Notes: a model not told the origin generated them from the letters alone. 52,273 bases of DNA from Bigelowiella natans CCMP2755 (GCA_000320545.1 ADNK01000180.1:1-52273); one strand, 5' to 3'; shown: positions 2,759 to 48,274, numbered from the stretch's first letter. A program made the numbers and translations.

Positions 2759-4010
2759 TTCTGCGATGAAGAATAATACACCTGAGCTAGCAAGTTTGCA
2801 GTGACAAAGTTGAATCATGATCACGCGCGAAACCTTGAGATGAGAGTAAGTTTTGTGACACATGTTATAAGGACAAGTCACACGCCATGCATGGCGCAAT
2901 CAATAGTTGCGGTGAGTTGTTTTTTTTTCATGACGCAATTGGCTACGCGTATGCATCTACAATGTCACGTGTGTGTGCATGACCTAGATGACGAGCTTGT
3001 TGAAGTGATTAATTTTTGAAAATGTAGATGATCTTGTGTAGCTACATGCTAGCATGTGTGCAAATTGCGGCTACAGCACAGACTCCATGCCAGTGTGATT
3101 CATTTTTTCTGTGGTCATCCTGAGTCTGGCTAACTGTCAACACAAATTTGGATCAATTTGACACATCTAAACATGCATATGAGACAGATGCAATGATGTG
3201 ATCAAATCTTTTCAACAGTCATCGCTAGGCCGTGATGCAGCTGCACAGATCAATGGACAAGGCAATGCAATGTGAGGTCACGTGCGTGCACGTCCACACA
3301 CACACTGACAAAAGCAATGCCACAGCGCTGTGCATTGCTAGATTGGGACGACCGTTGAAAAAATGTGCGCAATCATCTCATCACACACCCACTAGCCCGT
3401 CCCACATGCACGTGGGGATGCACTTCCAGACGCATGCTGGCACGTGTGTGCGCGGGTGTGTGTGTGTGCATGTGTGTGCGTGTGTGCTGGTGTGCCAGTG
3501 GTGTGTGTGTGTGCAGTCATGCATCACAACATGTGCATGCTTGCACATGCTGTCTAGCACACAACTGTGTGGTCATCCATGCACTGATTGTTGCACAAGA
3601 ACACTTGTTCACTTTTGTCTCACACACGTCGCAAGTCAAACGATCTTGGTCTTGTCAATCAGCGATCAAGCCGATCTAGCGACCTGCAATGATCACCTCT
3701 GCGTGCAATCACCTCTCCGTGTGATCACCGTCGCAGAGCATGCATCAGGCACACATTCACTTTGAGCTTGGTTTCAGAATGGAGAAGATGTGGACTGCGT
3801 TGCATGAGCATGCATCCAGTCGAGATTGCACCTAGTTGAGCGGTCTGCAAAAATGAAGAGAGAAGGCAAAAGAAAAAATTGACAAAAAAAGAAGAGAGAA
3901 TTCCCTGGACATTTTGAGTACGACTAGGAAAAATTTTCTGGAAGATGCATTTTCTCAAAAAAAAGAGAAACGAGGAAAAAAAGTAGTAGAGACTCTAGTT
4001 TACGACTCGT
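2759..4010. other. Convergent intergenic spacer S1, rich in short palindromes and RY alternation
   Basis: Dense TGCA, CATG, GCTAGC, CACGTG and TGTG/CACA; no credible ORF; lies between the gene 1 stop and the tRNA 3' end. Confidence 0.7.
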
Positions 4011-4012
4011 AT

Positions 4013-4018
4013 AAAAAA
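4013..4018 (-). terminator. Pol III oligo-T terminator of tRNA-Ala
   Basis: T6 on the minus strand, 2 nt after the tRNA discriminator base. Confidence 0.8.
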
Positions 4019-4020
4019 GG

Positions 4021-4093
4021 TGGAGAAGCCAGGTATCGATCCCGGTACCTCGTGCATGCTAAGCACGCGCGCTACCATTTGTGCCACTTCCCC
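4021..4093 (-). tRNA. tRNA-Ala(AGC)
   Basis: Reverse complement GGGGAAGTGGCACAAATGGTAGCGCGCGTGCTTAGCATGCACGAGGTACCGGGATCGATACCTGGCTTCTCCA folds as a 73-nt cloverleaf. It has the G3:U70 alanine identity pair, anticodon arm CGTGC-TTAGCAT-GCACG, and an A54-type T loop typical of eukaryotic tRNA-Ala. Confidence 0.95.
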
Positions 4094-5148: not shown

Positions 5149-6200
5149 CTGTGCGATGGTGTTAGTGTTTAATTTTGATTATTGATTTAATTGGGTAGTA
5201 TATATATAAGTATCCGACATAGTGCTGCCTATCTTACTTACTTACTTACTACGTTCCTAGGCGAGACCCTGTCAAGGGGAACTGGCAGGAATGTGCCTTC
5301 TGCCATCAGGTGGTTGAAGAGCGACAACCGAAATTGAAGCACACGACATTTTCGGTGTATCGCTGGAAGCCGTTTGCACAGAGTGAAGGAGTCAATGAAG
5401 CTTCCTCATTAGGAGAACAACTATCCTCCTCCGAGTCTACCAAAATAACATCTCAAAGTGCCAAGCATCTTGACGATGATTTTGATACTTGCTTCTCAAT
5501 TATGCCAAGTGATTTCTACTCTATCGATCTGGCATTCTCAAGGTGCGGATGATTGCATAATTTATCTTCCCCTTTCTCATATGCACTATCGTATTATATC
5601 ACGTTTATATATGTTGGGTACTACCTTAGGAGCATTCCAGGTGATGTCATTGAATTGCAGAAGTTAGTTGGGGACTATTTCTCCCCGAACGGAGGACAGC
5701 AAAACGATAACATTATGATTGGATATGTGACTATCAAAGAACTATGCACCACTTTTGGCACCCCGCTACGGAGTACAAAGGCTGTGCATTTGTTCTTACG
5801 GTGTGTTTCATCGTCAATTCAAGACCAACTCACAAATTTCGAGGCTCTTGCAGTCGCCTCTTATGCTGTAGTAGAGTGTGAGGAGTATCAAGATATGGCT
5901 GAGAAGGTTCACACCACTCCTCCCGCCGCTGTGAGTGCTACTACTAATAGTACTACTACTACTACTACTAGTAGTAGTAGTAGCGCAACCACCAAATGTG
6001 GGGGAGATCCTCCCCCCCCCCCCCCTCCCCTTTCTTCTCAACGTGGTAACGAGGAGCACACTGCTGTAATTGGTAGTAGCCTTAAACCAAGAGAAAGACG
6101 TTCAGAGATACCACCTTCCTCCTCCTCCTCCTCCTCCTCAATATCAGTTCCAGCATCTAGTTCTCATACAAGCAACTTCTACCTAAATCAAACACAACAA

Positions 6201-6237
<37 letters not shown>

Positions 6238-6790
6238 GACAGGGAGGCATGCAACCACCACCACCATCACCACCACCACCACCTCCTCCACAATCTTCCC
6301 GTCATCATCATCACATCTCACTACTACCATCAACGGATACCAAACGTAGTATGATGATGCGTGTAACTTGGGCGGCTGTGATGGCAGAGGCCAAGCGCAA
6401 AACTACGAAGAATGCGAACATATCAGAATCCGAAATCCAGAAACACATTGGCATGATTCGTAATGTGCTTAATAACGAGCCTGTCGTAGTCGAAGCATTG
6501 CGAAAATCCATGTCAAAATACTTTAAAGATCTTTCTCTCGAGAAGGATACCGCCACGCTCGCCGCCCATATTGGAAATCAAGCGGTGAAGCGCCATCTTT
6601 GTTATCGTAGAAACAGGTGAGGAGGAGGAGGAGGAGGAGGAGGAGGAGGAGCAGAGTCACCAATTAGTGTTGTTATCGACTATGTCAGCAGGCAGCTAGT
6701 AGCAGCATTTTGGATGATGCGTTTCATTTTAGATATCATCAGCATCATCATCATCATCATTCTTTTATGACTATTGTTAGGAAGTAGCTC

Positions 6791-6828
<38 letters not shown>

Positions 6829-7630
6829 ACTCGAGCAATCCTTTATTCTTATGGTCAAACGTAGTAGTAGTAACCCCTTTTTCTCGGTATTTGGTCCTCC
6901 AATTTTGATCATTCTTTATCTATTTACTGCTTCCTCTATATTCTCCCCCATAGCATTCCTCCTCCATCATCCTACTAACTTAGTACCTACTTCTACTACT
7001 ACTATTTACTACAAACAACACAGCTCGAGCCTCTCTGCAGCTTCGGTATACCTTGCATGCCAGTTGCAAGGTATGAGGACCACGCAAAACAGCTTTTGTA
7101 AGATTGTCGGACTCACGGAGGTAACGTTACGGAAAGTCTACAAGGAGCTCAAGAACCACTGGCCGCAGCTAGTTCCTGATAACTACAAGCCTTTTAGGGT
7201 CCCAAATGGATTGAAGGCACCCCTTAGTCACCAACGCCCTCCACCCCCCCCTCCCCCCAAGCGCTCGACGTCTACCCAACAGCAGCCTACTATAATCTCT
7301 TCGGGGGCACCATCATCATCATCATCATCGTCGTCGTCTTCTTCTATATCAGGAGTTAACGCTTATCATCATCATAGATCTCAATTATCATCCATGGTGG
7401 GTTCTGCTTCAGTCTCTCCTGCTGCATCATCATCATCCAATGTATGTACTTGTCACATCAACTTATTTGATTTCGTACTACAACAATGGCATTTGTAGTG
7501 TACATGTGTGGGGAGGACGGCTTAGTTTATACGTCGCTCACCGCTCAAAAACTTATGTTGATGTCGTTTTGTCTAGGGAGTGAGAGTGTGTGTGTGTGTG
7601 TGTGTGTGTCTTTCTCTATCCGTTGCCATC

Positions 7631-7676
<46 letters not shown>

Positions 7677-8248
7677 AACAGGGTGGAGCTGGTCCTTTGC
7701 CACCCCGTACACGCCCCACCCATTACGGTTGGAAGGAAAGCACACAGCGGCAGCAGCAACAACAACAACAACGGAAGGTGGTTTTGGTTGCTAGCAAGGG
7801 CTATGACCTTGTAGATGGTCTTCAAGACTTTCAAGTTCCGAAGCAATACACGAGTGATGGTAGGGATATATGGGCCAAGGAAGAAGGAGGAGGAGGAAGA
7901 AGAATAAGTGATGCTGCAGTCGAGCTGCTACAGGAGTATCCGCGACCTAAGGAAGTATATGCTGCTCTATCAGCTCAATGTAGTGGTAGTAGTAGTAGTA
8001 GTAGTAGTAGTAAGGGAATGATAAGCCGGCATAACAACGTCACTGTGGTCTCCAACAAGACGGTGCAGCAGATGCAAAAGAATACTACTAGTACCTTCCC
8101 GCCGCATCCTCCGCCTAAGGAGCTTGTTGTTACAACGCCAGGGACAACAAGAAAACTCGTCACTACGCTCGAAACAAACCTCATTCAGCAATTCGATTCC
8201 TTTGGAAACAACATCAGAGAGCCGAATAAAAGAGAGAATAATATGTAA
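4795..8248 (+). CDS. PBRP: pBRP-type ('plant-specific') TFIIB-related protein, multi-exon
   Basis: Zn ribbon MDQPFFKRCLSCHRSEIKNV/RDPVKGNWQECAFCHQVVEERQ. Second cyclin repeat ATLAAHIGNQAVKRHLCYRRN/SSSLSAASVYLACQLQGMRTTQNSFCKIVGLTEVTLRKVYKELKNHWPQLVPDNYKP closely matches the Arabidopsis pBRP motif as recalled (…CTRRNPISISAAAIYLACQL…GLTEVTLRKVYKELLENW…). Contains polyQ/P/S inserts. Confidence 0.85.
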
Positions 8249-9365
8249 GGACTACTTGGATAAAATTTCCCTCATCGCCAAGGTCATTTATCGTCAGTTA
8301 TTGTTGATGGTATGAACCAGGTTCAAAGGCAAATCATATGAATGTACATTATATTCTAGTTTCATGTGTATTATCATTTTCATTACATTTATCGTCTTTT
8401 ATTGCCACATTCCTAGAGGAAGGTGTGGCAAATTACGTTGAGTAACTGACAGTGTGAACATTAATCTTGTTCTTAAGAAGTGAACTACTATCACACTTGT
8501 TACCTACCATTGGTTTCGATGTTGGAACATTGCATGCATATCTGCTGTTTTGCGAGTGATACGGCACGATGATGTCGTACATGCATAGCTAGATAGTCAA
8601 GAGCACGCAGGCTAGCAGGCACCGTTTCGAATTGTGTATCTAGATGTACATACAGGCATGATCATAATGAGCGACATCCGCGTCACAAAAAGTAAATGGT
8701 CATGTGCGCAACGTAGTTGTGCTAGCTAGCGTCATCTAGTCATCGGACTCCAGCACCGCCGCGCGCGCAAGCTAGCAAGACCGCAGCGCACAGCTCAAGC
8801 TAGAGCTAAACACCGCATGAGGTAGCAACATGGCTAGCAGATAGCGCAGCACGGCTAGCCGGGAGTGCAGTGCACATCTCAGATGTCTCAGAAACGAGCG
8901 TTCATTGTGTTGTGATAACTACAAACCTTGCTTACTAGCTTATTTCGCATCATGCTAGCATGTCGCTATCTAGCTATGTCTAGATGTGCATGTGGCTGAC
9001 ATCATGCTAGATCACTGTCGCTAGCTGTGTGTGCATTCATCGTAGCATCATGAACTATGGCAGTCTAGTAGTGAAGCCAGGTGAGCCAAATGTGCATAGC
9101 AATCGATGTCTAGATGTGCCTGCTAGCTATAGCTACCATGCGTTTGCATTATTACTACATACTGCCGCGAATGTATAATGATGGCATTGCAACAAGCAAG
9201 GTAACAAAGCATTGCAGAGTAGTAATCAGACGAAATAAGCAAGCTGCGAGTGCGTGCGTGAACGTCAAACAATCTATAAATCATGTTAGCTATTTCTGCT
9301 ACTTAGCAGGAATAAACGGGATATAGCATAATCTATTTACTATTGTCGTACATGGAGTGGCTATT
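8249..9365. other. Convergent intergenic spacer S2, palindrome-rich (core about 8530-9310)
   Basis: Numerous GCTAGC, TCTAGA, AGCT, TGCA and CATG; microsatellites absent. Confidence 0.75.
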
Positions 9366-12300
9366 TCAAAAGGAATCAACCTTTATAACATTTGGAGAGC
9401 TGTAGGAATCGCTCCAGATTAGCTCTTCCTCTTCGCCAATCTGTTAAGTTTATACATCCTCATTCGTAGAAAGAATGGTCAGGGCAAAATGTGGTCACCA
9501 TCACAAGATCGCCTTCCTTAACACCAGCCTTTTTCAACGCTTTGTAAATCTGTAATAATATAAATAAATTTTATGCGAAATTGGTTCATCACTAATATGT
9601 TAGCATTACCCCCATTGCCCGCATAACAGTTTCGAAGCGCTCCACAGCGTCTCTGTTTATAAACACATATTGTCTTCTGAATCATCATAAAAATGTTGGT
9701 TGATCTTCGACCTGTACTCCCATTTTGTCATTTGTGCTAGCTTTTCAATCTTTGGGCTCGAAATCTGACAGCAGGAGAACCATTGTATCGTACTATGATC
9801 ATCCTTTTTGTCAAGAAACGAATAAGACTACACATCATCATTATTATCACCTTGTAAATCTTGCTGTCTAGCTGGTCAATCTGGTACGTAGGAACGACCT
9901 GAAATTACGAAGAAGCAACATACTCAAAATAGGTGTCAAAATAACCAAAGAAAAGAATCTAATTACTGTAGTCTGGGTTCTTTTCTTCTGTTGCTGTTTC
10001 TTCGAAACCTTGCCTTTGTTTCAGGAATAAAATGAATGAGGACATTCTCAAAGGCGATGCCTTGCAAAATACCTTGCGCCTCTGCGATCTCTTCTTGTAT
10101 TTTCTCCCGATTTCGCTCTTTTGTATCTTCCTCTATCATTCTAATATAAGCCAAATATGATAATAATGCTCAAGTTACCAATGTATCACTACCATTTAGA
10201 GAAATGATGATGACTCAAAAGTAAAGAAGACCGTTGGATAAGAGTGTTCGTATCACTGGATCGACCTATTATTCAAAGTAGACGACAACATCATGCGTGG
10301 TAGTATTATTATTACGGATTGTTGTTCAAATATGAGATCTGCTGTTTAGTAAATATTGAATCACCACCACCACCACCACGAGCAGCACCTTGTGCAGCAG
10401 TGAGTGACATCACAGGCATTCCTAGATTCTCAAAATGAGCTTTTATCTCGGGCCACTTATCTTGTGCTTCGGGGAGATCCATCTTGTTATAAACCTAGAC
10501 AGGTAGTGGGAATAGTAGTAGTGAGAAGAAAGTAATTAGGCTATTTTGCTGGTGCTGCTGCATTATTAAATGACTACTGACGAATAGTTTGTTGATGCAA
10601 CAATAACCTACCACGATTTGGGGTTTTGCTAGCATTCCAGGACTTGGATGATTGGACAATGACGCAAATAATAAGTAAGCAATTAGTACAATGATCATAT
10701 GCTGACAAATAGTTAATGGCATACGAGTAAATAGACTGATATATTATTCCTAACTAGTAATATGGTAATAGTACTAGTAAATACACCTAAAGAGTTCCAA
10801 CTCCTGCTGGATGGCTTGGTAGTCGTACAAGGGATCGGGACGATCTCCACTCAATAGATGAATGATGACTCGACATCTATCACAATAATAATCATAATCA
10901 TCATCATCATCATCAGAGAGCGTCATTTACTTAATCATCACTCGAAACAATGGTGGCAACTATGGTGATAATTTGGATGACTACTGTTTCTAGACATATT
11001 TAAAAAAAATAAATAAACAATGATAGCAAATAACACATTAGATACGGTAAAAACCCTAAGCAATCAAATAGAAACCGTCGCTCACTCCTTCTTCCTTCTC
11101 TTCCTCCTCGTCCTACTACTACTATTACTATTGTTGCTCTACTTCTACTTCTATCACGACAAACCACCTCTCCACGTGTCTTAAGAACTCAATTCCTAAT
11201 CCCTTGCCTTGATGTGCTCCTTCTAACAATCCTATTTAATGAATGAATGTAGTACATGATGCTGATTCCATTCTTAAATTAAGGATCGAAGACAACATAT
11301 CAGCATCGTATATTATTTAGTGCAAGCAAAAATCAGTAACCTGGAATATCTGCCACGACGATAGATTTGTAGCTGTTCAAACCAAGAACCATATTGGTGG
11401 ACAAACACAGTGAGATATATACAACCCGTCGTTGTCACACATAACAACAAAATCAACTATTATTTTTTAAGTTGTTCGAATAATTGTTCTTTGTGCTTTT
11501 ACTACTCACTCGTGACGGCATACACCAAGATTTGGTGCAAGAGTCGTGAAAGGATACGCTCCAACCTAGTAACAATTAGTATAATAGTCAGAATCAATCA
11601 TGACAAGTAGTATGTGTTTACATTAAAGAAAATATGGAGAAGAACACAGGTGGAAGAAGAGGGTGATTATAGGAAGTATCAGGTATGCGACAACGACGAT
11701 ATGAAAAATTACTAGTAGTACTATAAAACAAAGATATATTATTACTTTTGTTTGTGCTCTTCCGTCTGTCATTGCGTTGAGGAGAGTTGATTTCCCTGCA
11801 CTAGGAACTAGAAGAAGATGATGTAGTAGCAGCAAATAAGAAGGTGCTAATAATAAATAAGACTATAGCAGTAGTAGTAGTGGCGGTGGAAGTGGTAGTA
11901 GTAGTACGTAAACAGCATTTAAGGGACAACATGAAGGATAAATGGATGGATGGATAGATGGAAATGATCCCTGACTATCAACAATTCAAATCGTTCATTT
12001 AGTTAATTACTTACCTCCAACGATGCCGACATCTGCAACAAGTTTCAGCTCAAGAAGGAGCCATTGCTCCTTGCCCTTTTCTCCAGCTTCGGCGTATCTT
12101 TTTTAACATCACACGTGTCGTCGTCGTAAATGATAAGACGCCACAAGTGAAGAATATATAACGATGCATGCATAACATAGCACTGCCCTCTCATGTCATT
12201 ACTACAATTATAATAGGATCATCATCATCATCATCATCTGCAGCAGATAGTACCAGACGTCGTATTGTTATCATAATCATTTGGATGCTATATAGTTTTA

Positions 12301-13293
12301 AATAAATCGCACTTCAATTTTTCTTATCACATGCAGGACATCGATGTGAGTTCATTCCTTCTTCTTCTTCTATGTTGCTGCAACTAGAAGCTCATCCGTG
12401 CACTTACTCTGTAAATATCCCTTTTACTGGTTTAAGAACATGGTTTCCAAGACCTGGTTTATCGTCATTATTATCTATCATCTATTATCATCGAGTACAG
12501 AGAGGAGAGAGAGAGAGAGATAAAGATGCCCTACTACGTAAATTAGTAGCATCTACAGCAGAACGACGACGACGACGACGATGATGATGATGATGATGAC
12601 GATGATGACGATGATGATGATGATGATGACGATGATGATGACGACGACGATGATGATGATGATGATGATGACGATGATGATGATGACGATGATGATGATG
12701 ATGACGATGATGATGATTATGATGATGATGATTACAACGACGACGACAGCACAATAACAACATGCCTACTCCGCCTCCTCCTCCTCCTACTACTACAGAT
12801 GGATTGAACATATTCAAGAGGGAGACCTCCATCTCCGCCTTTTGCTACGAGCATTGTGTCGCCATTCTCTGATTATTTCCATTTAACAATTTTGAATCAT
12901 CATAAAGTAGTAATTCATTCATTCTCCATTGTCGAATTTGTTCTCTCCCCTCCCTACCCCCCTCCCTCTTGTTGTTTGTCGTTCAAACACATTACTCTTC
13001 TTACACAGCTATGGATGTAGTATTTGATAGTTGTTGATCATATAATAGTTGTAATGCACACTAATACGGAATCATCATCATCATCATCATCATCTTTTGG
13101 TTCGTCTTTTCTGGTCTACTACAATGCGGTATCCGGCTGCTGGTGCTGCTGCTACAACGACAACAACAATAGCCTACTAGCAGTTGTAGAGTAGTATTAC
13201 CAACTAGGTCTCCTAACATCTCCCCTCGTTGATCAGGATGATACTGATCTGCTGCATACACTAGGGTGCCTGGAGGTACCTAATTTGAGATTG

Positions 13294-13328
<35 letters not shown>

Positions 13329-13497
13329 GTGATGGTAATAGGGTTGGAGAGAGGAGAGACAACACAAACAACAACAGCTCGTCGTCGTATGATTTGTTGT
13401 TACTGAGGTTTATAAATTGATTTACAGCAACTATCTATTTTTAAACAATCAACTTATCATTATAATTATCACTACTATCGAGAAGGACCCAGCAGCA

Positions 13498-13533
<36 letters not shown>

Positions 13534-15499
13534 TTGAGCAATTACTTCACATATCTCTATCTAAAAAGCCAAAAGATATTCTTCTAACCACTTACATCAA
13601 CATAAACATCGCCTCCACATTCTCCGTTTCTGTGTTTTCCTGATTGATCGTGATAATAACAATGTTGTTCAATTTGCGATGTGGACGAGGGATTAGCACT
13701 AAATATCATCAATCTAGCAGTTGTTTACTCTGTTGTTTATATATATATTAATCGTTATTTATGCTGCTGCTGCTGCTACCTTGCCCATGGGTGCCACGTT
13801 CAGCTACAAAGTGCACCTGTTTGGCGGCGGCGTGTGTTCAAAATTATGACTATTTGAGTAACAACAACTATAGGAACAACTATCATGTGCTTCTTCGCCT
13901 AAAATCAGATCATCCTATTTTCCCTTTCTTCTTCTTCTCCTTCTTCTTTTAGTATTGTTGTTCTTTTCCTACTGCCATAACATAAACTGCTCTATTTGCT
14001 AGTAGTAACCGAGCTGCGAAAACTCCGAAGAGTATTTTCGGCCTCATTGACCTAATATTATGGCAGTATTATCCTAAATGAGGATGATGATGTAGGATCA
14101 TTTTGTACCCCCCCCCTTTTTATTCTTCGACGATGACAGACATAACAGCTTCATCATCAACAACAACAACTGCTGCATTAGCGCATGTTTGCCGTCGTAA
14201 CATTATTTATAAGTAGCAAAAAAAGGGTTAATCATTATATTAATATTACTACTAACACCAACATAGTCCCCCTCTCACCCTAAGGTAGATTGAGCCTCCC
14301 TTTCCTCCACTTCCTCCTGTCGCAGTCTTTGACCAGTAAAATGCACACACACACACACACACACAAAACCACACATGTAAATTATATTATATTAATAGTT
14401 AATATGGCCAACGAAGGCACTGCTGACACACAGATAGATAATAATGATAATAACACGCATATACGATGACGAAGAATGCACGAACATTAGTTATCAAAAG
14501 AAAGCCTGTGTTCACGAATGTTGTCTTCATATTTAACGCAAAATACTGTTTGAATTATCACCATTCAAGTTGGTGGATGCAAGCAAAGCATGGATGAGAG
14601 AGTGAAAGAAAACCACCTTCTTTTGCCCTTTCCTAAGAGTTTCAAAAGCAACACAACCTAGATAGTATTAATTGTATAACATTTAATATAAAATTCCATT
14701 AAAGTAGTATCACATACACTCGCAAAAACAAAAACAACAACAACAACATACCATCGCCACCATTCCCTGCTTTTACGTGTATCTTTACAGCATCAAAGTA
14801 TCTGTAGTAGATTATAATAATATTGATGATAGTAAGAATCTTAATGATCATGATGATCATCATCATAAACAACGACGATTATCTGGGTAAATTTCTCTCA
14901 TAATATCTCAGGATAATAGCTGCTTGCACACACCTTGCCTCCTTTGGAGCAGTTCTTCGTACACGCCTCTCATCCCCCATGTCCATCCCGTAATCGTCCT
15001 GGTAATAATATCGAATGGTGGTGCTTACTTCTTGTCAATAATGTTGATCAATGTTCATGATATTTATGAAGAATCATATGTTATTGATTGATGAGTACCC
15101 AATAGGCATCTTCTTCCTCCTCCTCATCCAAAGGAACAGATAGGTCGTAAACAGCTTTAAACTTGGGTCGCTTCTTCTCAAAGCCCTTTTGAAGATCCGC
15201 ATCCTTTTATGTTAATAAACTTATCATGCATGATGGGGTTGTTATTAACTTTTGCGTAAGCTGTTCCTCCCCTTATTTTCAGAAATAATAATAATAATAA
15301 TAATGATAATAACTAATTGCTACTTCATACAACCTCCAGAAGGGTATCTACATACGCGCGGAGAAGAGTCGCATTGCCTTTTGGGACCTGATTAAAAAGA
15401 AATAGTGGTTGTTCGCTTTGAGAAGCATTTTCAATCTTGGATATGTCAATTGACAATATAGAAGGAAAATATATTAAAACAAATGCGTATTTCACGCGC

Positions 15500-15557
<58 letters not shown>

Positions 15558-16078: not shown

Positions 16079-16146
<68 letters not shown>

Positions 16147-16180
16147 GTAAGAGGAGAGAGGTCAACCGAGCAATGCATAT

Positions 16181-16219
<39 letters not shown>

Positions 16220-17767: not shown

Positions 17768-17809
<42 letters not shown>

Positions 17810-19230: not shown

Positions 19231-19263
<33 letters not shown>

Positions 19264-20201: not shown

Positions 20202-20238
<37 letters not shown>

Positions 20239-21644: not shown

Positions 21645-21676
<32 letters not shown>

Positions 21677-36327: not shown

Positions 36328-37671
36328 ATGGAGGTGGAACAAGCGGTTAAACCCCAACAAATGGAGAAAGTGGATAGCAATGGTTGCAAGCAACCGTCGA
36401 CTGGAAGGTTGGATAGTCATGAGAGTAAGATTGAACCCCAAGTCGAGCATGTTCTTGGGTTCAAGCTTCCCAACGAAGTAGAAAGGGAGGGAAAAAGGTC
36501 GCATCGTTCCCATATTTACGTAAAATGCCTCTCTGTTTCCAGATTCGCTGAGACTGCAAATGACTGCTCTATTAGGTATGATCTCGCTGTTCAGGACAGC
36601 ATGAGCGTTCAGGTGTCCGGAGTGGACCCTCTTTACAATCGATTCAAGCAACTTCTTGATTTTATACCCATCACCAATAAAGATAGCGGCGATACAAAGA
36701 CTCCCTCACTAGACATGCAAGGACTACTGTTCCTTGTAAAATTCACTAAAAAAGCGTATATGTACTCGGAATGGATGACGAATGCTCAAGTTGAGAGCCT
36801 ATCAGGGGGCAAAGAAGCATTACGATCATTTTTGGAGCGAGAGCAACGGCGATGGAATAAGATTAAATTTCAAGTGAAAGAAGGCCAACTTAGAGGATGG
36901 AATGCTCCACGTCGTCTATCATTTTTTCCACGAAGTTTCTGCAAACCAGAGTTGATTCTATCACACAAAACGATGGGATCAAAATTATCGTTTCTCATTA
37001 AATGGCGCCACCTTCCTTACGATCAGGCAACTTGGGAACCATCCAGTCTTCTGTTTGGGGGGAAATTGGGTGATATTAGCGAACCTCTTAAGGGTTACCT
37101 GACACATTTAGCTCAGTTCCACCGAATATTAGCACAAAGTGATAATAGTAGTAGGAGGAGGACCTCACGCTCGTCCCGTTCGAACAAATCATCTTCTCCA
37201 GTCTATCTAAGAGCGGCAGAAAGCGCCTGGAGGACAGGAAAGTCAGGATCTCTATTTATCTCCAGCTCCCCGGCCTTTTCGCCAGCATTGATTGCGTCTG
37301 TGCTAAACCGGATCAGCAAATGCCCTCAGAATACCACCCATCGGCGCCCTTTCCTAGTTGTTGTGCCTTCTCCTGCTGTGGAATTTTGGGTTGATGAGAT
37401 ACGTAGAAGATGGGAAAATAAACAGCGTGTCGTCGGCTACTCCGGGTCTAAAGCTTCTATGGAGGCCGCTAAGAATGTTGGATGGAAATTCAGCAAGAAG
37501 AAAGAAGCGTGGACGCATCATCTGAACACGTCGTACCCATTATCATTACTGAATTACTATCAGAATATTCCAGCACATAGAACCCTAGTTCGTACTCTCT
37601 CTGTCTCTTCCTCTCTCTCTCTCTCTCTAGAAGCCTAGTTCGTACTCTCTCTGTTTCTTCCTCTCTCTCTC

Positions 37672-37719
<48 letters not shown>

Positions 37720-40238
37720 CCCCTCCCCCTCTTCATGCAACTTGGTTCACTTGCCCACGTAACAGGTACGCGACTTTGAAATTCGGCCTGTCGATAGATG
37801 ATGGGGAGCGTTTGCCATTTCTTGACAAGAAACTAGCCCCGAAGCGGTCCATTGTGAACCTAAAGTTTGACGTATTGGTCACTAGTCCAGACAACGTCCT
37901 TCGTGATATTCGTTCTCTGCATTCGCTTCGGTGGAAAGGCGTCGTATTATACGATGATATTGGCTTACGCTCCATAAGTAAGGAGGAACAATTATGTATT
38001 CTTCTTCTTCTTCTTCTTCTTCTTCTTCTTTTGACTTGGTGGTGTTAAGTTATCACTTATATAATCGTTTCGTAATGCCAATTTTAGATAAAATGATATA
38101 ATCGTTTTGTGATGCCAATTCTAGATAAAATGGGGACTCAGTTGTTCGAGTCTCTCAGTGTGTTGGTGCCTAGCCCCAACCGCCGAATACTGGTATTAAG
38201 GGAGAAACACCTCGACCATGTTCAAGCAAGCCATATGGAGAGGGAGGTCGTTCTACGATTCCTTAATGCTTTTGAGATTATGCCAGTTTTCCTCGGAAAT
38301 GCTATAAGGGTGGCACCTTTTCATGAAGAAAGGTGGTCAATCTGTTACTATCTGATACTACTGACGCTTCTAAGACTATTCGATTCACAATATAAAAGTC
38401 GGGATGATATATTAGATGACCCCTTCTGGCCTGCTCCTCTTCCCTTTCTTCTTTGTTTTTCTCTGGGTGTATCTCTTCCGTTACCTCCTTCTTCTTCTTC
38501 TTCTTCTTCTTCTTCTTCTTCTTCGTCTTCTTCATTCTCAGGTACGTGATCCCGATGCTAAAAGAAGAGAAAGAAACTATGTTGAAAGCCATTGAGGGGG
38601 AGAAACCGTTACTGCACGAGAGCTCGCAGCCTGATGAAGAGTACCTACGTATCATAGCCCAGAAACTCATTAATGCATGGGCTTCTCCTCCTTTCCTACT
38701 CGATAATTCTGCTGCTACTACTACTACTACTACTGCTGCTGCTACTTCCGCACAACAAGGAGGAGGAGGCGGAGGAGGAGAACCCGCAAACACAGTAGCA
38801 GTGGTAAATGAGAGCGGGAAGATACGATTTCTTAACACATTACTTAAGAAGGCTCTTGGGCAGAAGAGTAACCAACGAAATCGGCAAAGTCGTGCCGTTA
38901 TTTTAGCACATTCTCCACAAGTCTTGGATACTGTACAAAGGGCACTTGAGTACCTGTCTTGGGAGCCGATTCGATATGGAGGGGAGGCGCAGTCGGAAAC
39001 ACACAGCAGAGAGGTAGTAGCATATTGCTCTCTCTCTCATTGTGTTTTTTGTATGTGGTGAAGGCTTAAGAAAATAAGATTTGGGGAAAAATAATTAGGA
39101 CGATCATCATCATCATCATCATCATCATGGATGATATTTATTTTTATTATTCTTACATCAGTAACTCTCTTCCCATTTCGAAGTGCTTAGAATATTTTTT
39201 ATGTTTATTTGCGTGGGAACAATAGGCGGCAATTGAGCGGTTTAATGAATGGTGTGACACCACCACCACCACCACCACCAGCAGCAGCAGCAGCAGAACC
39301 AGTAGTAGTTCCAAAGGAGAGTGGCCGCTTTGCTTCCTTCTCACTGCAAAAGAAGCAAATTCGGGAAATATTGCACTGAAGTAACAACATCAACACAGAA
39401 TCTTGACCATGATAACGTGTAGAGTTGTTTTGAATTGCATTTCTGAATATTTATTTCGAATAAATATAATGTTGTGACTTCTCTGCTGTAACATCTGAAT
39501 CATAATCCTTTTTGTGCTTGTACTGTTGTACTGTTGTATAAAAATATGTTTGGTAACCAACGTATCGAAGGATGGATCCAGAGTTTGATGTGGGAATTCT
39601 TGTCGATTCTGATCTCGCTAACCCGCATAGAGATCTTGAGTCCATACTAAACCTAATAATCTTCCCGTCACAGCAGCAAGCACTTGCCTCTTTTTCGCCT
39701 ACTACTACTACTACTACTACTACTTCTTCTTCTTCTACAACCACTACTGCAGTATCGACGTCATTCTCCTCCCATCACCAAACATCTGCGGAGATGACTA
39801 AGAAGCAGCCATCAAAGAAGCCGCCGCAGCTGCCATTCAAAGTTCATCGAATGATCAATTTTCTCTCATTTGAGCACCATTTCTTGCTGATGTCATCGTT
39901 GGCGCAGTCAGGCAGTATATTCACGCTGTCTGGTTTCAACTTCACGCGACTTCATTTCCTGAATGCAATCTCAAGGGGTGTCCAGAGTCTTTACCAGATT
40001 CCGCAGCTGGTTCGCATCGTTGATAATTATGAAGCCATGCTCAAGTTCGCTAAAGGGGGGCATGTGCAACCAGAATCTCAAGACTGCAAGGGGCTCAACA
40101 CCTCGGAACTTGGCGACGAATTCTGGCAGAAGCTCCAAGGAATTATGGAAGTTAAGTATCAGGAGGAGGAGGAAGAGGGGGAGGGAGATGAAAAAGAGAA
40201 GAAGGAGGCGATGATGGAAAAAATGATGAAATCATCGG

Positions 40239-40270
<32 letters not shown>

Positions 40271-40841
40271 GGTCGGATTACTACTACTACTACTGCTGGT
40301 ACTACTACTAGTACAGCCCAAGTCGATGAGGATAAAAACAAGGTTGCAATGATGGATACGGCTACGGCATGTTCTCTTGACGTGACGGCGAGTGCAGAAG
40401 CTACTACTGCAACCACCACGTCTTCGCAAGCCAAACGAAAGCGCGATGCAATAGAATCGGAATCTCGAAACAACAATGCGGTGTATGGTAACGGTGAGAA
40501 GGACGATGATGCTCAAAGTAGCAAGAAACGTAAAAAAGGCGACATGGTACCCCCCCAGCATCATACGCAACATCCTACGCAGCATCAAGAGGAAGAAGAC
40601 GACGATGCAACCAGCAGTGATGAAAGTCATTCCGCCATGAATGGTGGTAGTAGCAGCAAAGAGGAGGTGAAAATTGGTAACTTGGTGACGGATATTGTTC
40701 ACGAGTGGGGTGCAGATGCTGTATCGTTCTTCATTAATATGCTAGGCATTCCACAAACTGGTCAATTAACACTAACAACCAAAAGTTGTCAATATGATGT
40801 TACATAAATTTTGCAACGGGCGGCTCTGTCTCTTGCTCTCG

Positions 40842-40889
<48 letters not shown>

Positions 40890-41280
40890 AATAGACGCAC
40901 AACACTCACTCAAATCCATGTTATTATATCAGCGATCTCATTGAGGCAAAATGGAATCACGGGATCCGAGCTTCTATCATTCACTGACGAAGAAAAGCTG
41001 AAGGAGTACGACATTAAGCACCAAGCGGAACGGTATGATAAATCACATGCAGAGTTGGGTTCTATTTTCTGACAGATATGATGTGATTATTCCTTTAAGG
41101 ATGGTTTTGGTGTCGGCCGTGAATCATCTTCGAAAGCCTTGCAACACGTGGACTGTGGATTTGCTCGCTCCAACTCTGAAAAACGTAGATTATTTGCTCA
41201 ATTCCGACAGTTGCAACGTAGATGGGGCTGAAGCTGAGATTGATGATGGCGATAGCACAGACTGTTCTGAACCCAAGTAA
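36328..41280 (+). CDS. CHD-like protein: tandem chromodomains, degenerate SNF2 helicase lobes, C-terminal SAM domain
   Basis: Chromo motifs FLVKFTKKAYMYSEW and FLIKWRHLPYDQATWE. SNF2 remnants PFLVVVPS, KFDVLVTS…LRWKGVVLYDD, SGKIRFLNTLL, AAIERFN, ILVDSDLANPHRDL, KVHRMI. SAM-like WGADAVSFFINMLGI…LRQNGITGSELLSFTDEEKLKEYDI…RMVLVSAV. Confidence 0.8.
37578..37710. repeat. Tandem duplication, 50-nt period, in a CHD-like intron
   Basis: TAGAA(C/G)CCTAGTTCGTACTCTCTCTGT(C/T)TCTTCC+(TC)n occurs twice. Confidence 0.9.
38060..38132 (+). repeat. 37-nt tandem duplication spanning a 3' splice site
   Basis: TATAATCGTTT(C/T)GT(A/G)ATGCCAATT(T/C)TAGATAAAATG at 38060 and 38097. Confidence 0.9.
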
Positions 41281-42515
41281 TGAAAAGATAATAAGCAAAG
41301 TGGGTGAATGCCATGTAAGTACTTGAATTATTTTATAATTTGTTATAAACAATGTCCCAAATGATGCGTCTATACGTCTAATAAACATGTCTAGCTGCCA
41401 TCATCGCTAAGATTACGTGTTATAGATGGCATGTATGCGTGAAATCCATGCATACATGTACAGAAGGATGTTGGCACAGTTGTGCCCGCACGCTAGCGCT
41501 ACGATACGCGCATGTGCGCAGCATGGCAATGCTAGAATAATGGTGGACACATGCAGCTAGACAGGTGTGCAATATGTGATTACCCATGCACAAACATATC
41601 TAGATGATGCTCTAGCATCGCATGTTGTTGCGCGCAGGGTATGTGTACGTATGCTCTAGCGCTAGCTAGCTAGCATGCACTAGCTAGTGGCGCATGCGAT
41701 TTTGGTAACATCATGCGGAGACGTGCACAGAAACAAAGCAATCGTGATAACTACTAGCAGATGAATGCATGACAATGAACGTAACGTAAGTGTGCACAAC
41801 GCCGTGTTCACATGCTCTAGCTAGCTAGACATGCGATGTGCCACTTCTACACACTCGCTAGTTTGTGCTAGTGTTGTGCGTGACAGCCGACAATTGGTGT
41901 GGCGTGTGCAAGCGCATCGTACATTACAGCTATCTAGCCATGAGCGTAGTCGCATGACTATAATACTATCATGCATGTGCACTGTGCCATGTTCGATCCA
42001 AGCGTTACGCGTAGCGCAATGAGCACTACTATAACTAGCCGGGCTACTACTGCTAGAGCATGCTAGCTAGCATGCCGCAAACTTTGCGCTGCACCTCATG
42101 TTTCAACAGGTTGTTCATCAACATTTGCTTATTGCCATGCTAGCATGGCTAGATGGAAAGGCCATTCCATTTTAGATTTGCAATCCGCCACATTTCGCGA
42201 CAGCTGCAAGAAGTCGACAGAAAATGCTTGGCCGTCAGCATTCTTCAGACGACAGGCTAGTTGGCTCGGATGGACGAGGAAACTAAGAGTGTTGAGCCTA
42301 CTCCAAGTATTCTATACTTACTAATACGAATTTATACATGCAAGAATGAGAATGCAGAGCCGTTGCGTTGCGCATGCAGTGGAGGCTGCTGGATCGATTT
42401 GGTAATCTATTCAGTGCGCACCGTACTACATGTCTAATCTTGCTTTATATCTAACCTTGCTTCCAGAACTTTGATTCAGAAATTGAATATTTTAGTCGAA
42501 ACACAATATTTCGTT
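41281..42515. other. Convergent intergenic spacer S6, palindrome-rich
   Basis: GCTAGCTAGCTAGC, TCTAGA, GCATGC and GTGCAC are dense. Confidence 0.75.
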
Positions 42516-43771
42516 TCAGTATAGCCACATTGTTATCGCAGCACGTTTTGCCTCAGAAGGTAATACTTCGTGTTCCATGTATTCGCTTAAGAACATTACT
42601 ACCTTATCTGCAGTAGGAGGGATATCTACAAAACACTCCGCAGGTTGACGAACTTTTCCACCATTTCTAGATTTCGATGTTCTCTCATTCACTTCATCTT
42701 TATTATTGGGAACACACTCGTTTCCATTTTTATCCTTATCACTTTCCTTTAACGGTAAATGTATACGCAACTCCCCACCGTCGCCTTCCTGCCACTCTGA
42801 AGTATGGTATTTATTACTTTTTGCTTAGAATTGCATAATCATGGGACATAGTGTATGTGAATCTTTCAGGGGAAGTACCAGGGTTGAGATAGTATAAAAT
42901 CGTGATCCTCCGTTGTGGCCCTCCTCCAGGATATGAGTCTTTGTGACGGACATATCGGGCTCCATTTCCAGGATATACCGCAGCCTGTACAGAAACCTTC
43001 TCGCATTTGAAGTCTATTGCTGAATTCAAATCTAACTTTATATTCTCCAACGCTTTCACGACTTTCCTGATCGCGAGATTCTCCTCATTTGTAGGATTTA
43101 TCCATGTCGTTAAATCGCCCCTGTTGTTGAAATGTTGTAACGTGAACGTCGGCAAACTAAAAGTGGAATAATTTAAATTTCTCATTATGGAGATGTACAC
43201 ATCTTACCTAAGATTCGACTGCTTCCATGAACTCTTGCCCTATATGCTTGAAGATTCAAATTAAGGAGAAATCCAGTGCTTGAGTAAGGAGTACCTTCAT
43301 ACTAGCAGGTTTCAGAATAGATTTTCCCTCAAGTCCAAGGACAGCCTCTCGACATCTTTCCATCTAAACAAGCAGCCATTTATGTAAAGGAGGAGAATGC
43401 ACGGCGAATATGCGTAAACCTTTTGTAGATCACCAAGAAAGCCATTCTTGATTACATATCCATATTCTAGTATGTAAAAAGTCATCAAGAATCCTGCGAG
43501 CATCATCATTAGAAATTATTACTTACTACCATTCAATTTTTCAAGATCTCTTTTCGTCAAAATTTTGAGTTGCTTTTCGTCAAGTTGAGACAATTCAAAA
43601 ATCTAACATTAAAAGAATTATTTATTGCGAGTAAAATTTAAAAAGTATACAAGATTGAACAACTTTCGGAATTTTCTGTGAAGGTGACTGGCTGGAAGCT
43701 GCATCTACTACATCCACATTGAGTGCCGATAGAATCTTAAGCTTCAGATTTGGTGGTAAGGCATCCATCAT
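42516..43771 (-). CDS. EGLN/PHD-like prolyl 4-hydroxylase (2OG-Fe(II) oxygenase)
   Basis: GYVIKNGFLG, RGDLTTW, AVYPGNGARYVRHKD (HxD), RRITILYYLNP/EWQEGDGGELR, SEYMEHEVLPS..KRAAITMW (distal H and the 2OG-binding R). Confidence 0.88.
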
Positions 43772-44213
43772 TCTTGCAAGAAGTGTTATTTGAAAATCTT
43801 TAACTGCTGCAACGATGAAATTTGTCTGTAAATTGCACGTGGCATACTTAAAAATAAGTATTATCGAACTGAAGAAGGTGCCTTTCAATGTTTGAGCGTT
43901 GTATCAAAGTTTGATCTACTGTGCGAGATTGAAGGTCTCCCGTCCTGTCATCAGCGATGATCTTCTTCTTCTTCTTCTTCTTCTTCTTCTCCGTCCTCCC
44001 TTTTCTTTAATTTGTTACAATATTATTAGTAGAGACAAGATAATGTCCATGTCGCAATATCCTTTCGCTTGTTATTTCCTTCTTTTAAATTGCTTAAAGC
44101 TAATGTTCATGTCGCAATATATTTATATAGGCCGTTTCCTTCTCTCCGGAAAATCCCGCAACAGCAACATTAGACTTAGATTTGTTGTCCCGTCCCATTC
44201 TTCTTTCTGCACG

Positions 44214-45938
44214 ATGGCTGAATTCCAACTCGAGGTATACGCGTTACTGCTTCTTGCCACCACCACCGTCGCAACGTGTTGCGTGTACATCCCAGTACCT
44301 TTGCACATGTTAATTGCATCAATGGTGACCATATTCGTTGGAAGTATGGGTGCGCTAAGGGCCTCGGACAAGAAGGTACGGTTGTTAACTGAATTTGTCT
44401 GATGCGCTTGATTGAGGCTTGAGATTTTCGGTTGGTTAGCCTAACATACACTACTACTAACGATTAATATCTGATGGAACTTTAGGTAGTTGAAGATTCG
44501 AAAGTGAGCGCAGCGCTGGGGTCCAAGGATGTCCACAGAATGTCCCGCAGTGACGTGTAATTGTGAAATGATTCGATAACAACTTTACATATGTAACACA
44601 CCACTGGATAGAGAATGTCGAGTTTTGAACGTCATTAACCTTATACGAACATGAATAGGTACGCCTCTCCCATCATAGGGTCTGCTGTCTTGTTTGGGCT
44701 GTACATTGTATACAAGTTTTGTCCTAAGGACTATGTGAATATACTGGTCAAGCTCTACTTCGGTATTTTCGGAGTTTTTAGTATCGGTAATTACCATTTA
44801 CTACTCTTATAGTCGATTAAATGAGAAGAACTGCATCTCACAAAGGCTTATTTCTCTTGAAGGTGAGCAAGTAGGGTTTTTCATCATGAGTTTTTTCATC
44901 GAATCTCAGGCGACAAAGAAGGTAGACAATCAGCCACCATCTTGTAGTAGTAGTAGTAGTAGTAGTAAGAGTAGTAGTAGTAGTAGTACCGCCAGAACAT
45001 CAACTTTTTTTTATATACTACACCTGGAGAATGGCTGCTTGGCTTGTCCAGATAAACTCATCTAGAATGATAATATTTTAGGTGCAGTGGTTACACCGAA
45101 AGCTGCTGTCAATTCCGTACCTTGAAGTAACATGCAACACATTAGTAGTTTGTGCTAAACGATCGAGCGTGGGCATATATGTTTGTGTTGTGTGCCTTGT
45201 ACGTAAGGCAAATGTTGTCGTAATATATACTTACTAAAATTAGACGGATGTTACGGCGCTGGATGCTATAGGCTGTCTTGCTGGGAGTGTACGTTTTCAA
45301 ATTTACGCATTTTGCTAAAAACTAGAGGCACACGCACCAATCAATTATGCATAGGTTATTGGCGGTTGGTATCTACTGAAGAATCATTGGGTAATTTGGC
45401 TAAATTTATCAGAATCATATCACCATGTAAATCCCTCAGCAGCCACCTCATCCTGAAACAGGTTGCCAATAATATCTTTGGGGTGGCTTTCTCACTGCAG
45501 GTATGTATGTATGTATGTATGTATGTATGTATGTAGTGGTAGTGGGAAGAGACTTTACGGAAGAAGACTCTCCACTCTCCATACGTATTTCTTCTCTTCT
45601 TATTGTTCCATCTCATCAAAATTCTATCTAATACTTCTTAGGCCATAAGGATGCTTTCTATTGGAAGTTATTTCAACGGAACCATACTTTTGGTCGTCAT
45701 TTCGTCGTTTGTTTCATCATTTTCTCAATTACAAAAATGTACATATTTAGATGTACATATTTTTCATTGTAGTTTTCCTTTCTCTTTCTTCCTTGATCAT
45801 GTATAGTCTGGTCTATTCGTATACGACATCTTTTGGGTATTCGGAACCGACGTTATGGTTACAGTGGCGAAATCTTTTGACGGACCCATAAAGCTATTAT
45901 TTCCAAGGTGAAGAAAAAGATTAAGAAGAAGAGGAAAG

Positions 45939-45978
<40 letters not shown>

Positions 45979-47303
45979 CCATACAACCGAGCAGTAGTTT
46001 TCGGACAAACACGTTTCTCAAAGAGGGTGATTTGTTTAATTGTAGATGGATTCAGGATGACAAAACAGGCAAATGGATGTCTTCGATTTTGGGACTGGGA
46101 GACATTGTGTTACCAGGAATATTCATTGCATTGCTGTTGAGGTCGTTCCTTTTACTACTACATGCTGCCATTTATGTGGTATCGATGATCACCACATAAT
46201 TGATGCTGTAACAAGATGATTGGAATAACCTGCAGGTTTGACAGATATAGACTGTCAGAGTTGAATCGGTAAGAGATTCACGACTTCAAGCATTTATTTA
46301 TCTTGCTGCTATGTTCTTCTCCACAAGAATATCATCTGACGTTTGATACTACCATGATTGATTTATAGGGTTGGAGGTGGAGAAAAGACCACTCAATGCC
46401 ATCATCGATCATCGTCGGGACTATGGAAGTACGTACGAATAATGAAGAAAATAATACTACTGAGGATAAAAACAGTGTGTGTTTGTCGCAGCTGAATAAG
46501 TCCTGAAATATGGATGATGATGTGGTAGGTATAAATATTTCTGCTGGGCAATGGGGGGCTATGCTCTTGGCCTTGCGATAACCATCGCTGTCATGTAATG
46601 AATTATGCATGGGATTGGTTGCGTAGGTAGTTGATTGATTATGGGCATAATATCATCCATCTTTTGACAGGAATGCATTCAATGCTGCCCAACCAGCATT
46701 ATTGTATCTAGGTAATACTCATAAGAATAACCCATCCAAGCTGAATTTAATGTGGAAGCAACAGCTAGTGATGTTTTTCTCATCATGGGTCGATCATTAC
46801 CAACCCCTGAGAATCCAATCGTGCGTGTTATTATGTGTATGTGTCATCAGTACCATGTTGCATCGGTGCGAGTATTGTGAAGGCAGTCATGGAAGGAGAG
46901 TTGAAGGAGCTGTGAGTCAATTCATACAAGACCATATAACCACAAACACGCACACACACACACACACACAGACAGACACACATAAACACATACATCACGG
47001 TGTATGTGGAGGGATTTAGAGTATCTGGAGGAGGGGTGGGAGGGGAATACATGTGTTGATGTCACACTTAAAAAAAACTGAATACATCCACAAACATTGA
47101 CAATGATAGATGGAATTACGAGGAGAAAGATGAGGGTGATACGGATCCCGGTACTTTGCCTTCATCCTGCATAAAACCCATCACAAACCGATTTCTCAAA
47201 TATTTTTGCTTAATTTATCTCACATCTAACACTCCTTTGGTTTTCTGATATGAAAAAAGATTCAGGAAAACAAATTAATTCAGGCAAAGCTCATTCGGAG
47301 TGA
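44214..47303 (+). CDS. SPP: Signal peptide peptidase (A22B, HM13-like)
   Basis: PIIGSAVLFGLY, GLFVYDIFWVFGTDVMVTVAKSFDGPIKLLFP (YD), LGLGDIVLPGIFIALLLRFD (GxGD), AQPALLYL (PAL); TGA 47301-47303. Confidence 0.95.
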
Positions 47304-48274
47304 TGTAAACACACCAAGGGATACACATGGCATGGACAAATGTCACATAATTTCTTTGCAACAAAAGCAAGATACTCTAGTAAATTTCGGCATTATTATC
47401 ATATTTCTTCAGTTTGGCCAGCGTAGCACTGCATGGCACATGCTCAATTTATCTAGTGCATCATGAGGAAGGTTGACACGCACACACACGTTGCTATGCG
47501 CTGGCGCAGCAAATTGAACCACAATGCATAATGAGACACCACGAGCTACTCACCACAATGCAGGCCGCTGCTGTAGCACAACAATATGCTAATCGTGTTG
47601 GCTACGTATGTGTCCAAGGTGCATATGTGTACATGTATGTACCTGTATGCATGCGCACCATCCATTCCCCCTGATGCTCATGCATTGTGCACCTATGTGT
47701 ATGCACATCCAGAAACGTGGTGACATAATGACTGCAGCAACGACCGAGCTCTAGCTAGCCAGTGTTTTCGCTGCGAGTTGACAATGCAATCTTAATGCGC
47801 ATTGTGACAGCATCGCTAACTGTTTACAGCTAGGCAGCAATGTGATCGAATAATGTCACATGTTGTTGCATGTGCTGTTCTGGCTGTGGCAAGCAATCTA
47901 GCAAGGGCAAAGCCTTGCGATTGAGCACAACACTGCGACCATACATGATGAGGCTTCCTCGTCATCAGGCCTTATTTCGAGCTGATTGATGATCGTGTTG
48001 TTGCCGTCTATGGCTACATTCTCACTAAGTAAAGCTGTTTGCGCCATGGAAAAAATACACCCTTTGTCGGCACACATAGCTTTCATACTGCTAGGCATGG
48101 CAACATGAAGCTCTCCATGGTATTTTGCGTGCGAGAGAATTCTTTTAAGGTGAGACATAACTAAAAGCAGAACAAACATACAAACATCGGCCGTACATCA
48201 GTCGCTATTCTATCTAGCAAGAAGAATGGCCATTGTTTCTATGCATGTATACGATATCTCTACTTGAGCTGATT
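47304..48274. other. Convergent intergenic spacer S7, palindrome-rich
   Basis: TGCA, CATG, CTAGCTAG, TACGTA and ACATGT are dense. Confidence 0.65.

Follow-up and report, generated by a model that had tools for sequence, protein, structure and literature searches.

What is the palindrome-rich DNA that lies behind the genes of Bigelowiella natans? The question is raised by a contig of strain CCMP2755 (GCA_000320545.1 ADNK01000180.1:1-52273), whose full 52,273 nucleotides (nt) are called the window below. In it a first-pass annotation had described seven intergenic spacers dense in short palindromic words and had read them as arrays of binding sites, the footprint of 5-methylcytosine deamination, symmetric sites of DNA modification, or DNA prone to Z-DNA and cruciforms. 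The spacers themselves are real: a sliding count of six 4-mers (CTAG, GCGC, CATG, TGCA, AGCT and CGCG) peaks at exactly those seven places, and nowhere else in the 52 kb is as dense. We propose as the probable answer that the spacers are not promoters but the DNA between neighbouring polyadenylation (poly(A)) sites, and that their palindromes are a by-product of insertion scars and of a mutation bias at TpA, not a designed signal. Genome-wide searches were made in the 91.4-Mb eukaryotic assembly of which the window is contig C3557; stretches of the same composition, called islands, were sampled from the window together with 200 kb of two other contigs (252 kb), and some scans used 282 kb.

CTAG insertion scars and a dinucleotide bias in the spacers

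Compared with the rest of the window, the spacers are enriched 5.6-fold in CTAG, 6.2-fold in GCGC, 4.0-fold in CGCG, 3.8-fold in CATG, 3.3-fold in TGCA and 2.8-fold in AGCT, while ATAT, TATA and TTAA occur at only 0.3-0.5 times the outside frequency and pyrimidine-run words are also depleted. Against dinucleotide-preserving shuffles, the supposed excess of palindromic words stands firmly for the CTAG family (106 CTAG against 25 expected, z 17; GCTAGC 33 against 3.2; TAGCTA, TCTAGA and CTAGCT likewise enriched) and modestly for CATG (129 against 88), but vanishes for TGCA, GCGC and CGCG, which lie at expectation. The palindromic grammar is made of two layers, words produced by CTAG insertion and a dinucleotide bias. 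TGCA, GCGC, CGCG and GCATGC follow from the latter (GpC, CpA and TpG high, CC/GG low) together with purine-pyrimidine alternation. Across all seven spacers rho is 1.34-1.89 for GpC, 1.24-1.79 for CpA/TpG and 0.43-0.79 for CC/GG, and the bias persists in every one of them when each CTAG and 4 nt on either side are masked. Three divergent gaps lack the composition (rho GpC 0.96), in agreement with the first-pass annotation, whose report of purine-pyrimidine alternation is equally borne out: alternating tracts of at least 10 nt add up to 819 nt in the spacers, 2.3 times the 349 +/- 57 nt of the shuffles. In the spacers these tracts mix TG, CA, TA and CG units; the tracts of genes consist of (TA)n, (CA)n or (TG)n alone. 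Once those containing CTAG are set aside, palindromes of 8-12 nt are about as numerous as shuffles predict (63 seen against 50, 17 against 14 and 8 against 4).

The CTAG words carry the mark of insertion with target duplication. An exact duplication of 4 or 5 nt flanks 23 of the 106 spacer CTAG (two of them with 5 nt), where 0.4 would be expected by chance; in the islands of the 252-kb sample a 4-nt repeat flanks 71 of 285 CTAG and a 5-nt repeat 10, and another 45 have a repeat with one mismatch. Among all 256 middle words of the pattern N4-M4-N4, CTAG ranks first at about 30 times expectation, and the 282-kb sample holds 97 exact scars after exclusion of low-complexity sequence, the duplication being mostly 4 nt and sometimes 5-6 nt long. 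The repeat copy in spacer 3 (table below) carries the scar ACAT-CTAG-ACAT at 23623-23634, a place where nine aligned paralogues have a single ACAT. Further copies of this repeat are scarred at different positions (GTTG-CTAG-GTTG and TTTG-CTAG-TTTG in copy L010, and a decayed CCTG-CCAG-CCTG in copy L006). The CTAG scars are insertions, because the paralogous copies lack the 8 nt.

The targets follow a symmetric rule. Among 110 sites, the first duplicated base is C or A in 96 and the fourth is G or T in 92, the second and third are A or T, and the flanks favour C at -1 and G or C at +1 (G/C in 74 of 110). The consensus c-M-W-W-K-g is palindromic, and a symmetric target preference with a 4-bp stagger is a trait of dimeric transposase or integrase cutting. 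CATG-CTAG-CATG alone occurs at 3,828 sites genome-wide, against 7 for the reversed control; since CATG accounts for about a tenth of targets, this suggests some 40,000 exact scars in the genome, from which new scars would arise at a roughly estimated 1e-4 per genome and generation if a steady state holds. Scars are about 30 times denser inside islands than outside. Exact scars also occur outside the spacers (10418-10429, 35397-35408 and 42663-42674), one of them inside the span of the P2 gene, and a few, such as that at 35397-35408, lie in genes, so islands are not the only place where the scar process acts. The excess of CTAG consists in large part, and probably for the most part, of 8-nt insertions with a target duplication (a quarter of the CTAG have an exact one and more have a degenerate one), which contradicts the earlier proposal that these words arose by change of CAG/CTG to TAG/CTA. 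Literature searches on CTAG footprints returned nothing relevant and no paper describing the scars; DNA sequencing runs X1 and X9 had no indel differences across 22500-28499.

It is proposed that a transposase- or integrase-like enzyme repeatedly cut symmetric c-M-W-W-K-g sites with a 4-bp stagger, and that each event would have left an 8-nt mark consisting of CTAG and a copy of the four target bases. Such a mark would most simply be the excision footprint of a cut-and-paste element with inverted ends starting CT, CTA or CTAG. The scars would supply CTAG, GCTAGC, TCTAGA and CTAGCTAG. Point mutation in the islands, which goes for the most part from TpA to CpA/TpG and includes a large proportion of transitions, would have scrambled TA-rich stretches and ancient (TA)n/(CA)n microsatellites into purine-pyrimidine runs full of TGCA, CATG, GCATGC and ACGT. 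Fragments of mobile elements would lodge in the spacers.

Two observations concern candidate agents. Harbinger-type DDE domains are encoded in stop-free open frames of 200-527 codons at C777:78413-78880 and at least 10 other loci, and these may be active or domesticated; Harbinger-type elements usually make 3-bp duplications. Plain 4-nt duplications of the topoisomerase II type were considered and rejected, as they number only 186 against 122, are mostly (CATG)2 and (CTAG)2, and do not follow the M-W-W-K rule.

Scar decay and the mutation spectrum of the islands

Since a scar always begins as CTAG, the forms to which it decays reveal which mutations prevail locally. Among CATG-flanked scars genome-wide, the variants CCAG (505) and CTGG (508), made by T>C or A>G at TpA, together number 1,013, against 127 sites for TTAG plus CTAA (C>T or G>A) and 160 for the transversions CAAG plus CTTG; reversed-pattern controls gave 1-7 sites, and the variants rank in the same way in the 282-kb sample. 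The direction of decay is from TpA to CpA/TpG, that is, from AT to GC, the reverse of the AT-biased baseline of the species. Their free decay shows that the CTAG sites are not conserved for binding or modification. According to a preprint by Mettrop et al. (2026, bioRxiv 10.64898/2026.01.13.699255), silent integrated viral DNA of B. natans undergoes A>G/T>C change only at TpA, against an AT-biased baseline in mutation-accumulation lines, and the decay of the scars may well be the work of the same TpA mutator. The window thresholds given there are passed by spacer 1 only (rho TpA 0.36 and CpA/TpG 1.79), the other six spacers having a near-normal rho TpA of 0.69-1.22.

In the repeat family represented in spacer 3, the 757-nt consensus contains 3 TpA, and at 15 sites some copies have CA where others have TG, which is what independent resolution of an ancestral TA would give. 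TpA sites change 4-5 times more often, a figure that comes from 3 sites only. Along copies L002-L010, A>G change peaks at C-A-T and G-A-T (7-8%, against 1-3% elsewhere), and CpG is gained from CpA/TpG about as frequently as it is lost. The alternating tracts of the spacers are plausibly old microsatellites scrambled by transitions, which would yield TGCA, CATG, ACGT, GCATGC and TACGTA.

The idea of a deamination footprint in silent islands survives in part, in that A to G change at TpA fits it, but the chemistry of 5-methylcytosine at CpG does not. CpG is not more depleted in the spacers than in genes (its rho in the spacers is 0.88, rising to 0.94 if scars are masked; the remainder of the window has 0.77 and exons 0.73); 5-methylcytosine decay is therefore not the driver.

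Transcription, repeats and gene layout around the spacers

RNA was followed across 22500-28499 (one run with raw reads and three others), which covers spacer 3 and the left part of spacer 4 of the seven, with a 3'-biased library that is blind to unstable read-through. The RNA of the plus-strand gene stopping at 22925 is over by about 23100, and depth is 0-0.2 over 23100-23899; on the opposite side, loose poly(T) ends place poly(A) sites of the minus-strand P0 gene at 24081 and 24019, at distances of 33 and 95 nt from its stop codon. The core of spacer 3 (about 23100-24019) is the one whose limits were traced on both sides; it lies between the poly(A) sites of the two genes and is without stable polyadenylated RNA. 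The RNA of the plus-strand gene stopping at 27031 ends near 27300, and 27300-28499 is essentially without reads; the covered left 1.2 kb of spacer 4 begins just past the poly(A) site and is equally without polyadenylated RNA. P0 uses two poly(A) sites, and the 3' untranslated regions are short beside the 1.1-kb gaps.

The first-pass annotation had seen no long homology between spacers and had inferred a shared grammar, not copies of one element. The former is right in general and fails for the repeat-family fragment in spacer 3; the latter is sustained, as 468 of the 8,834 nt of spacer DNA belong to a family and only short, weak pieces recur between islands. This repeat has 40 further genome matches at 71-91% identity, which are partly fragments of the same copies, and the copy in spacer 3 has a DNA contig depth of 7-16 times baseline. 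Full copies start CACAGCTTGCCCAAAC and finish GTTTGGGCAAGATGTG, with inverted termini of 25-30 nt (CAC...GTG), and all nine fetched copies sit within islands. A stump of a long interspersed nuclear element was ruled out by the defined ends on both sides and the inverted termini, and the repeat is classed with the miniature inverted-repeat transposable elements (MITE-like). The element of about 775 nt has an internal 70-nt palindrome (copies L002-L010, e.g. L004:1158-1925), and the copies at C2196 (about 53.5-54.4 kb) and C675 (about 52.1-53.4 kb) are interrupted and might contain filled scar sites. Spacer 6 is unique in the 91-Mb genome, while spacers 1 and 4 match simple repeats only, those of spacer 1 being (GT)n-like. 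Islands share 621 local matches, against about 180 in dinucleotide shuffles, with about 25 above the best shuffle score; the common pieces are 50-200 nt long and belong to several families. Island DNA makes up 11-15% of the 200 kb from the two other contigs, and the 34 islands of at least 500 nt in the 252-kb sample, delimited by a k-mer threshold, measure 519-1,633 nt (median 901, standard deviation 254).

Stop codons of open frames form 13 of the 14 spacer edges, and the fourteenth, the right edge of spacer 1, is a transfer RNA (tRNA) gene for alanine, the sole match of the Rfam search. The interval from it to the plus-strand gene starting near 4795 shows no protein gene on the minus strand, and spacer 1 is head-to-tail for RNA polymerase II because the next protein gene past the tRNA lies on the plus strand. 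The claim that every junction is tail-to-tail accordingly holds for spacers 3, 5 and 6, where RNA or Pfam matches support convergent orientation, is half shown for spacers 2 and 4, weakly based for spacer 7, where two open frames ending in stops, 29 and 46 codons long, are the sole guide to orientation, and wrong for spacer 1. Codon-usage scoring, splice-site consensus and a leave-one-out 5-mer strand classifier were each too weak to orient genes, and Pfam searches of open frames in the ambiguous gene regions mostly gave no matches. Over the whole window a strict alternation of gene orientation is apparent, with about 13 protein genes in head-to-head pairs parted by islands; the single head-to-tail junction holds a tRNA, and the stretch 9366-22925 may contain more than two genes.

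Table. Spacers, scars, repeat and flanking genes of the window.
Feature	Position	Strand	Remarks
Spacer 1	2759-4020		after stop of a plus-strand gene; k-mer peak; rho TA 0.36, CA/TG 1.79, GC 1.34; most TpA-poor of the seven
Scars of spacer 1	2979-2992, 3045-3056, 3334-3345
tRNA-Ala(AGC) gene	4021-4093 (Rfam RF00005, 47 bits); 4019-4093 (ARAGORN)	-	right edge of spacer 1
TFIIB-related gene	5553-8248	+	adjoins spacer 2
Spacer 2	8249-9365		after the TFIIB-related plus-strand gene; k-mer peak; 21 CTAG, 9 exact N4-CTAG-N4; rho GC 1.75
Spacer 3	22926-24113		convergent gap; flanking stops at 22925 (plus-strand gene) and 24114 (P0, minus strand)
5'-truncated MITE-like repeat copy	23258-23725 (468 nt)	+	inside spacer 3; element of about 775 nt, non-autonomous, terminal inverted repeats
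Ribosomal protein P0 gene	24114-25172	-	right flank of spacer 3
Spacer 4	27032-29021		longest; k-mer peaks 27205-28095 and 28361-28983; (CTC)n tract 27840-27915
Scars of spacer 4	27350-27361, 27359-27370, 28362-28375
Tetrahydrofolate-dehydrogenase-like exon	33120-33389	+	Pfam PF02882; left side of spacer 5
Spacer 5	33941-35011		convergent gap; 13 CTAG, 0 with exact duplication; rho GC 1.78, CG 1.44
Stalk protein P2 gene	ends 35012	-	tail ...IDFSDDDE*; right flank of spacer 5
CHD-type gene	36328-41280	+	left flank of spacer 6
Spacer 6	41281-42515		densest island; 26 CTAG, four exact scars
2-oxoglutarate-Fe(II) oxygenase-like exon	42817-43203	-	Pfam PF13640; right side of spacer 6
Spacer 7	47304-48274		k-mer peak; rho GC 1.73, CA/TG 1.66

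Competing explanations and comparison with known systems

The islands might instead be functional spacers that hold converging polymerases about 0.9 kb apart to allow termination or insulation; selection would then act on length or chromatin state, not on the palindromes, and leave the sequence open to scars and mutation. The narrow range of lengths (971-1262 nt in six of the seven gaps, and the island median and spread given above) agrees with this, as do the usual total length of spacer 3 despite its 468-nt repeat fragment and the fact that at this spacer, where poly(A) sites were mapped, the island begins and ends close to them. We nevertheless consider such a function unlikely: no motif is conserved, the words are derived from insertions and decay, spacer 1 has the same DNA though the next polymerase II gene runs the same way, and the island lengths depend on the k-mer threshold while gene-orientation classes were scored only inside the window. 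Arrays of binding sites, as first suggested, find no support here, since CTAG arise by insertion and decay along the local bias without selection, and no other motif rises beyond the dinucleotide level. There is a small chance that the CTAG marks, instead of being relics of a lost selfish element, are made as a matter of routine by a DDE-type nuclease or integrase that the host has domesticated and that acts on silent DNA behind genes; islands would then grow by 8-bp events and, with the TpA mutator, form a genome-defence or spacer-maintenance system without a described counterpart. We regard it as improbable that one or a few element families, inserted behind genes and since heavily mutated, gave rise to the islands, whose similar length would then be that of the ancestral element. 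The excess of weak similarity over shuffles, the restriction of the 775-nt element with its terminal inverted repeats to islands, and the capacity of a TpA-directed bias to erase homology would all suit it, but nothing else in 91 Mb matches spacer 6, only simple repeats match spacers 1 and 4, the shared pieces are short and from several families, and islands with different repeats inside all have one composition.

It seems very unlikely that silent islands are marked by a DNA modification, restriction-like or chromatin system which recognises CTAG and the other symmetric words. The genome does encode C5-cytosine methyltransferase domains, including one in a 649-codon open frame at C1391, and the context of the words is strongly symmetric (G/T-CTAG-C/A); however, a quarter of CTAG have an exact target duplication and more a degenerate one, their absence from paralogous copies marks them as new insertions and not selected sites, the decay products CCAG/CTGG reach about a quarter of the intact number, and CpG is not depleted. 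The insertion origin likewise makes the modification sites of the first-pass annotation unlikely. The C1391 methyltransferase domain (G000:C1391:110667-111599) is full-length (262 bits) and its frame uninterrupted; an intron-less frame in an intron-rich genome may point to a viral or bacterial origin. Literature searches on methylation in B. natans returned nothing relevant. A structural role as Z-DNA or cruciforms likewise lacks clear support: the alternating tracts do exceed shuffles, but long palindromes are absent and positive supercoils disfavour both structures. According to the twin-supercoiled-domain model, it is positive supercoils that gather in convergent gaps.

Several results weigh against our preferred explanation, that the palindromes are a by-product of scars and TpA bias in DNA between poly(A) sites. 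The agent has not come to light in the searches made: a scan of 282 kb for CT...AG ends with inverted repeats and a 4-nt duplication gave chance-level matches only, clustering of the sequence beside every CTAG in the same sample gave only paralogues and local duplicates, and a piggyBac-type transposase domain had no genome match in a search whose own controls gave none either. Among the 21 de novo indels of the published mutation-accumulation lines there are 0 CTAG insertions, where about 0.4 would be expected; the insertions include one +7-nt and two +11-nt events whose last bases are ...AACA or ...TACA, and none contains CTAG (bioRxiv 10.64898/2026.01.13.699255, supplementary tables). Only one of the seven spacers is strongly TpA-poor, so they are not the saturated hypermutation islands of the preprint, and TpA editing alone does not explain the GpC excess (rho 1.5 with scars masked) and the CC/GG deficit. 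Recognisable repeats make up only about 5% of the window's spacer DNA. The lengths of the gaps, and the upper bound of 1,633 nt on islands in 252 kb, are narrower than accumulation of junk predicts; scars are about 30-fold concentrated in islands although introns should tolerate them; and the 3'-tag library would miss unstable read-through RNA.

If the by-product explanation holds, about one seventh of the sampled DNA preserves the legible traces of two unusual processes, the action of an enzyme that left tens of thousands of identical 8-bp marks by a clear target rule and an AT-to-GC, TpA-specific mutation regime. The scars could then serve as dated internal clocks that all start as CTAG, from which the mutations of silent DNA could be measured across the genome with no need of an outgroup. 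The result also removes a tempting misreading of the palindromes as regulatory or modification sites.

Among known systems, trapped topoisomerase II yields plain tandem duplications by fill-in of 4-nt overhangs. The scars share with these the 4-bp stagger and a weakly symmetric consensus, and topological stress is to be expected in convergent gaps, but here CTAG sits between the copies. Repeat-induced point mutation (RIP) of fungi changes CpA to TpA, raises TpA and makes DNA AT-rich. RIP and the islands have in common a context-specific transition bias on silent or repeated DNA that reshapes the dinucleotides; the direction of mutation is opposite, and dependence on duplication is a trait of RIP. 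Closer in kind is the TpA hypermutation of viral DNA in B. natans itself (Mettrop et al. 2026, bioRxiv 10.64898/2026.01.13.699255), with which the islands share change from TpA to TpG/CpA, transcriptional silence where RNA was followed and an excess of CpA/TpG; the preprint also reports that TpA-poor coding sequences are enriched in transposase and reverse-transcriptase domains. Unlike in the preprint, the bias is deduced here from scar decay and not from new mutations, and neither gene-tail islands nor CTAG scars are described in the parts of it consulted.

The scars themselves are best compared with the footprints of cut-and-paste transposons. Excision by Tc1/mariner elements such as Sleeping Beauty leaves footprints of the form TA-CAG-TA, for example. 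Here the duplication is of 4 bp and variable, the residue is the palindrome CTAG, and no matching element was found in 282 kb; literature searches brought up no superfamily described with the combination of a CTAG residue and a variable 4-bp duplication. The marks also differ from known footprints in number, at about 40,000, and in their concentration in spacers that are without polyadenylated RNA where tested. What they have in common with cut-and-paste footprints is a constant few bases held between two copies of the target duplication, a symmetric target as from a dimeric DDE enzyme, and the standing of the marks as insertions relative to paralogous copies.

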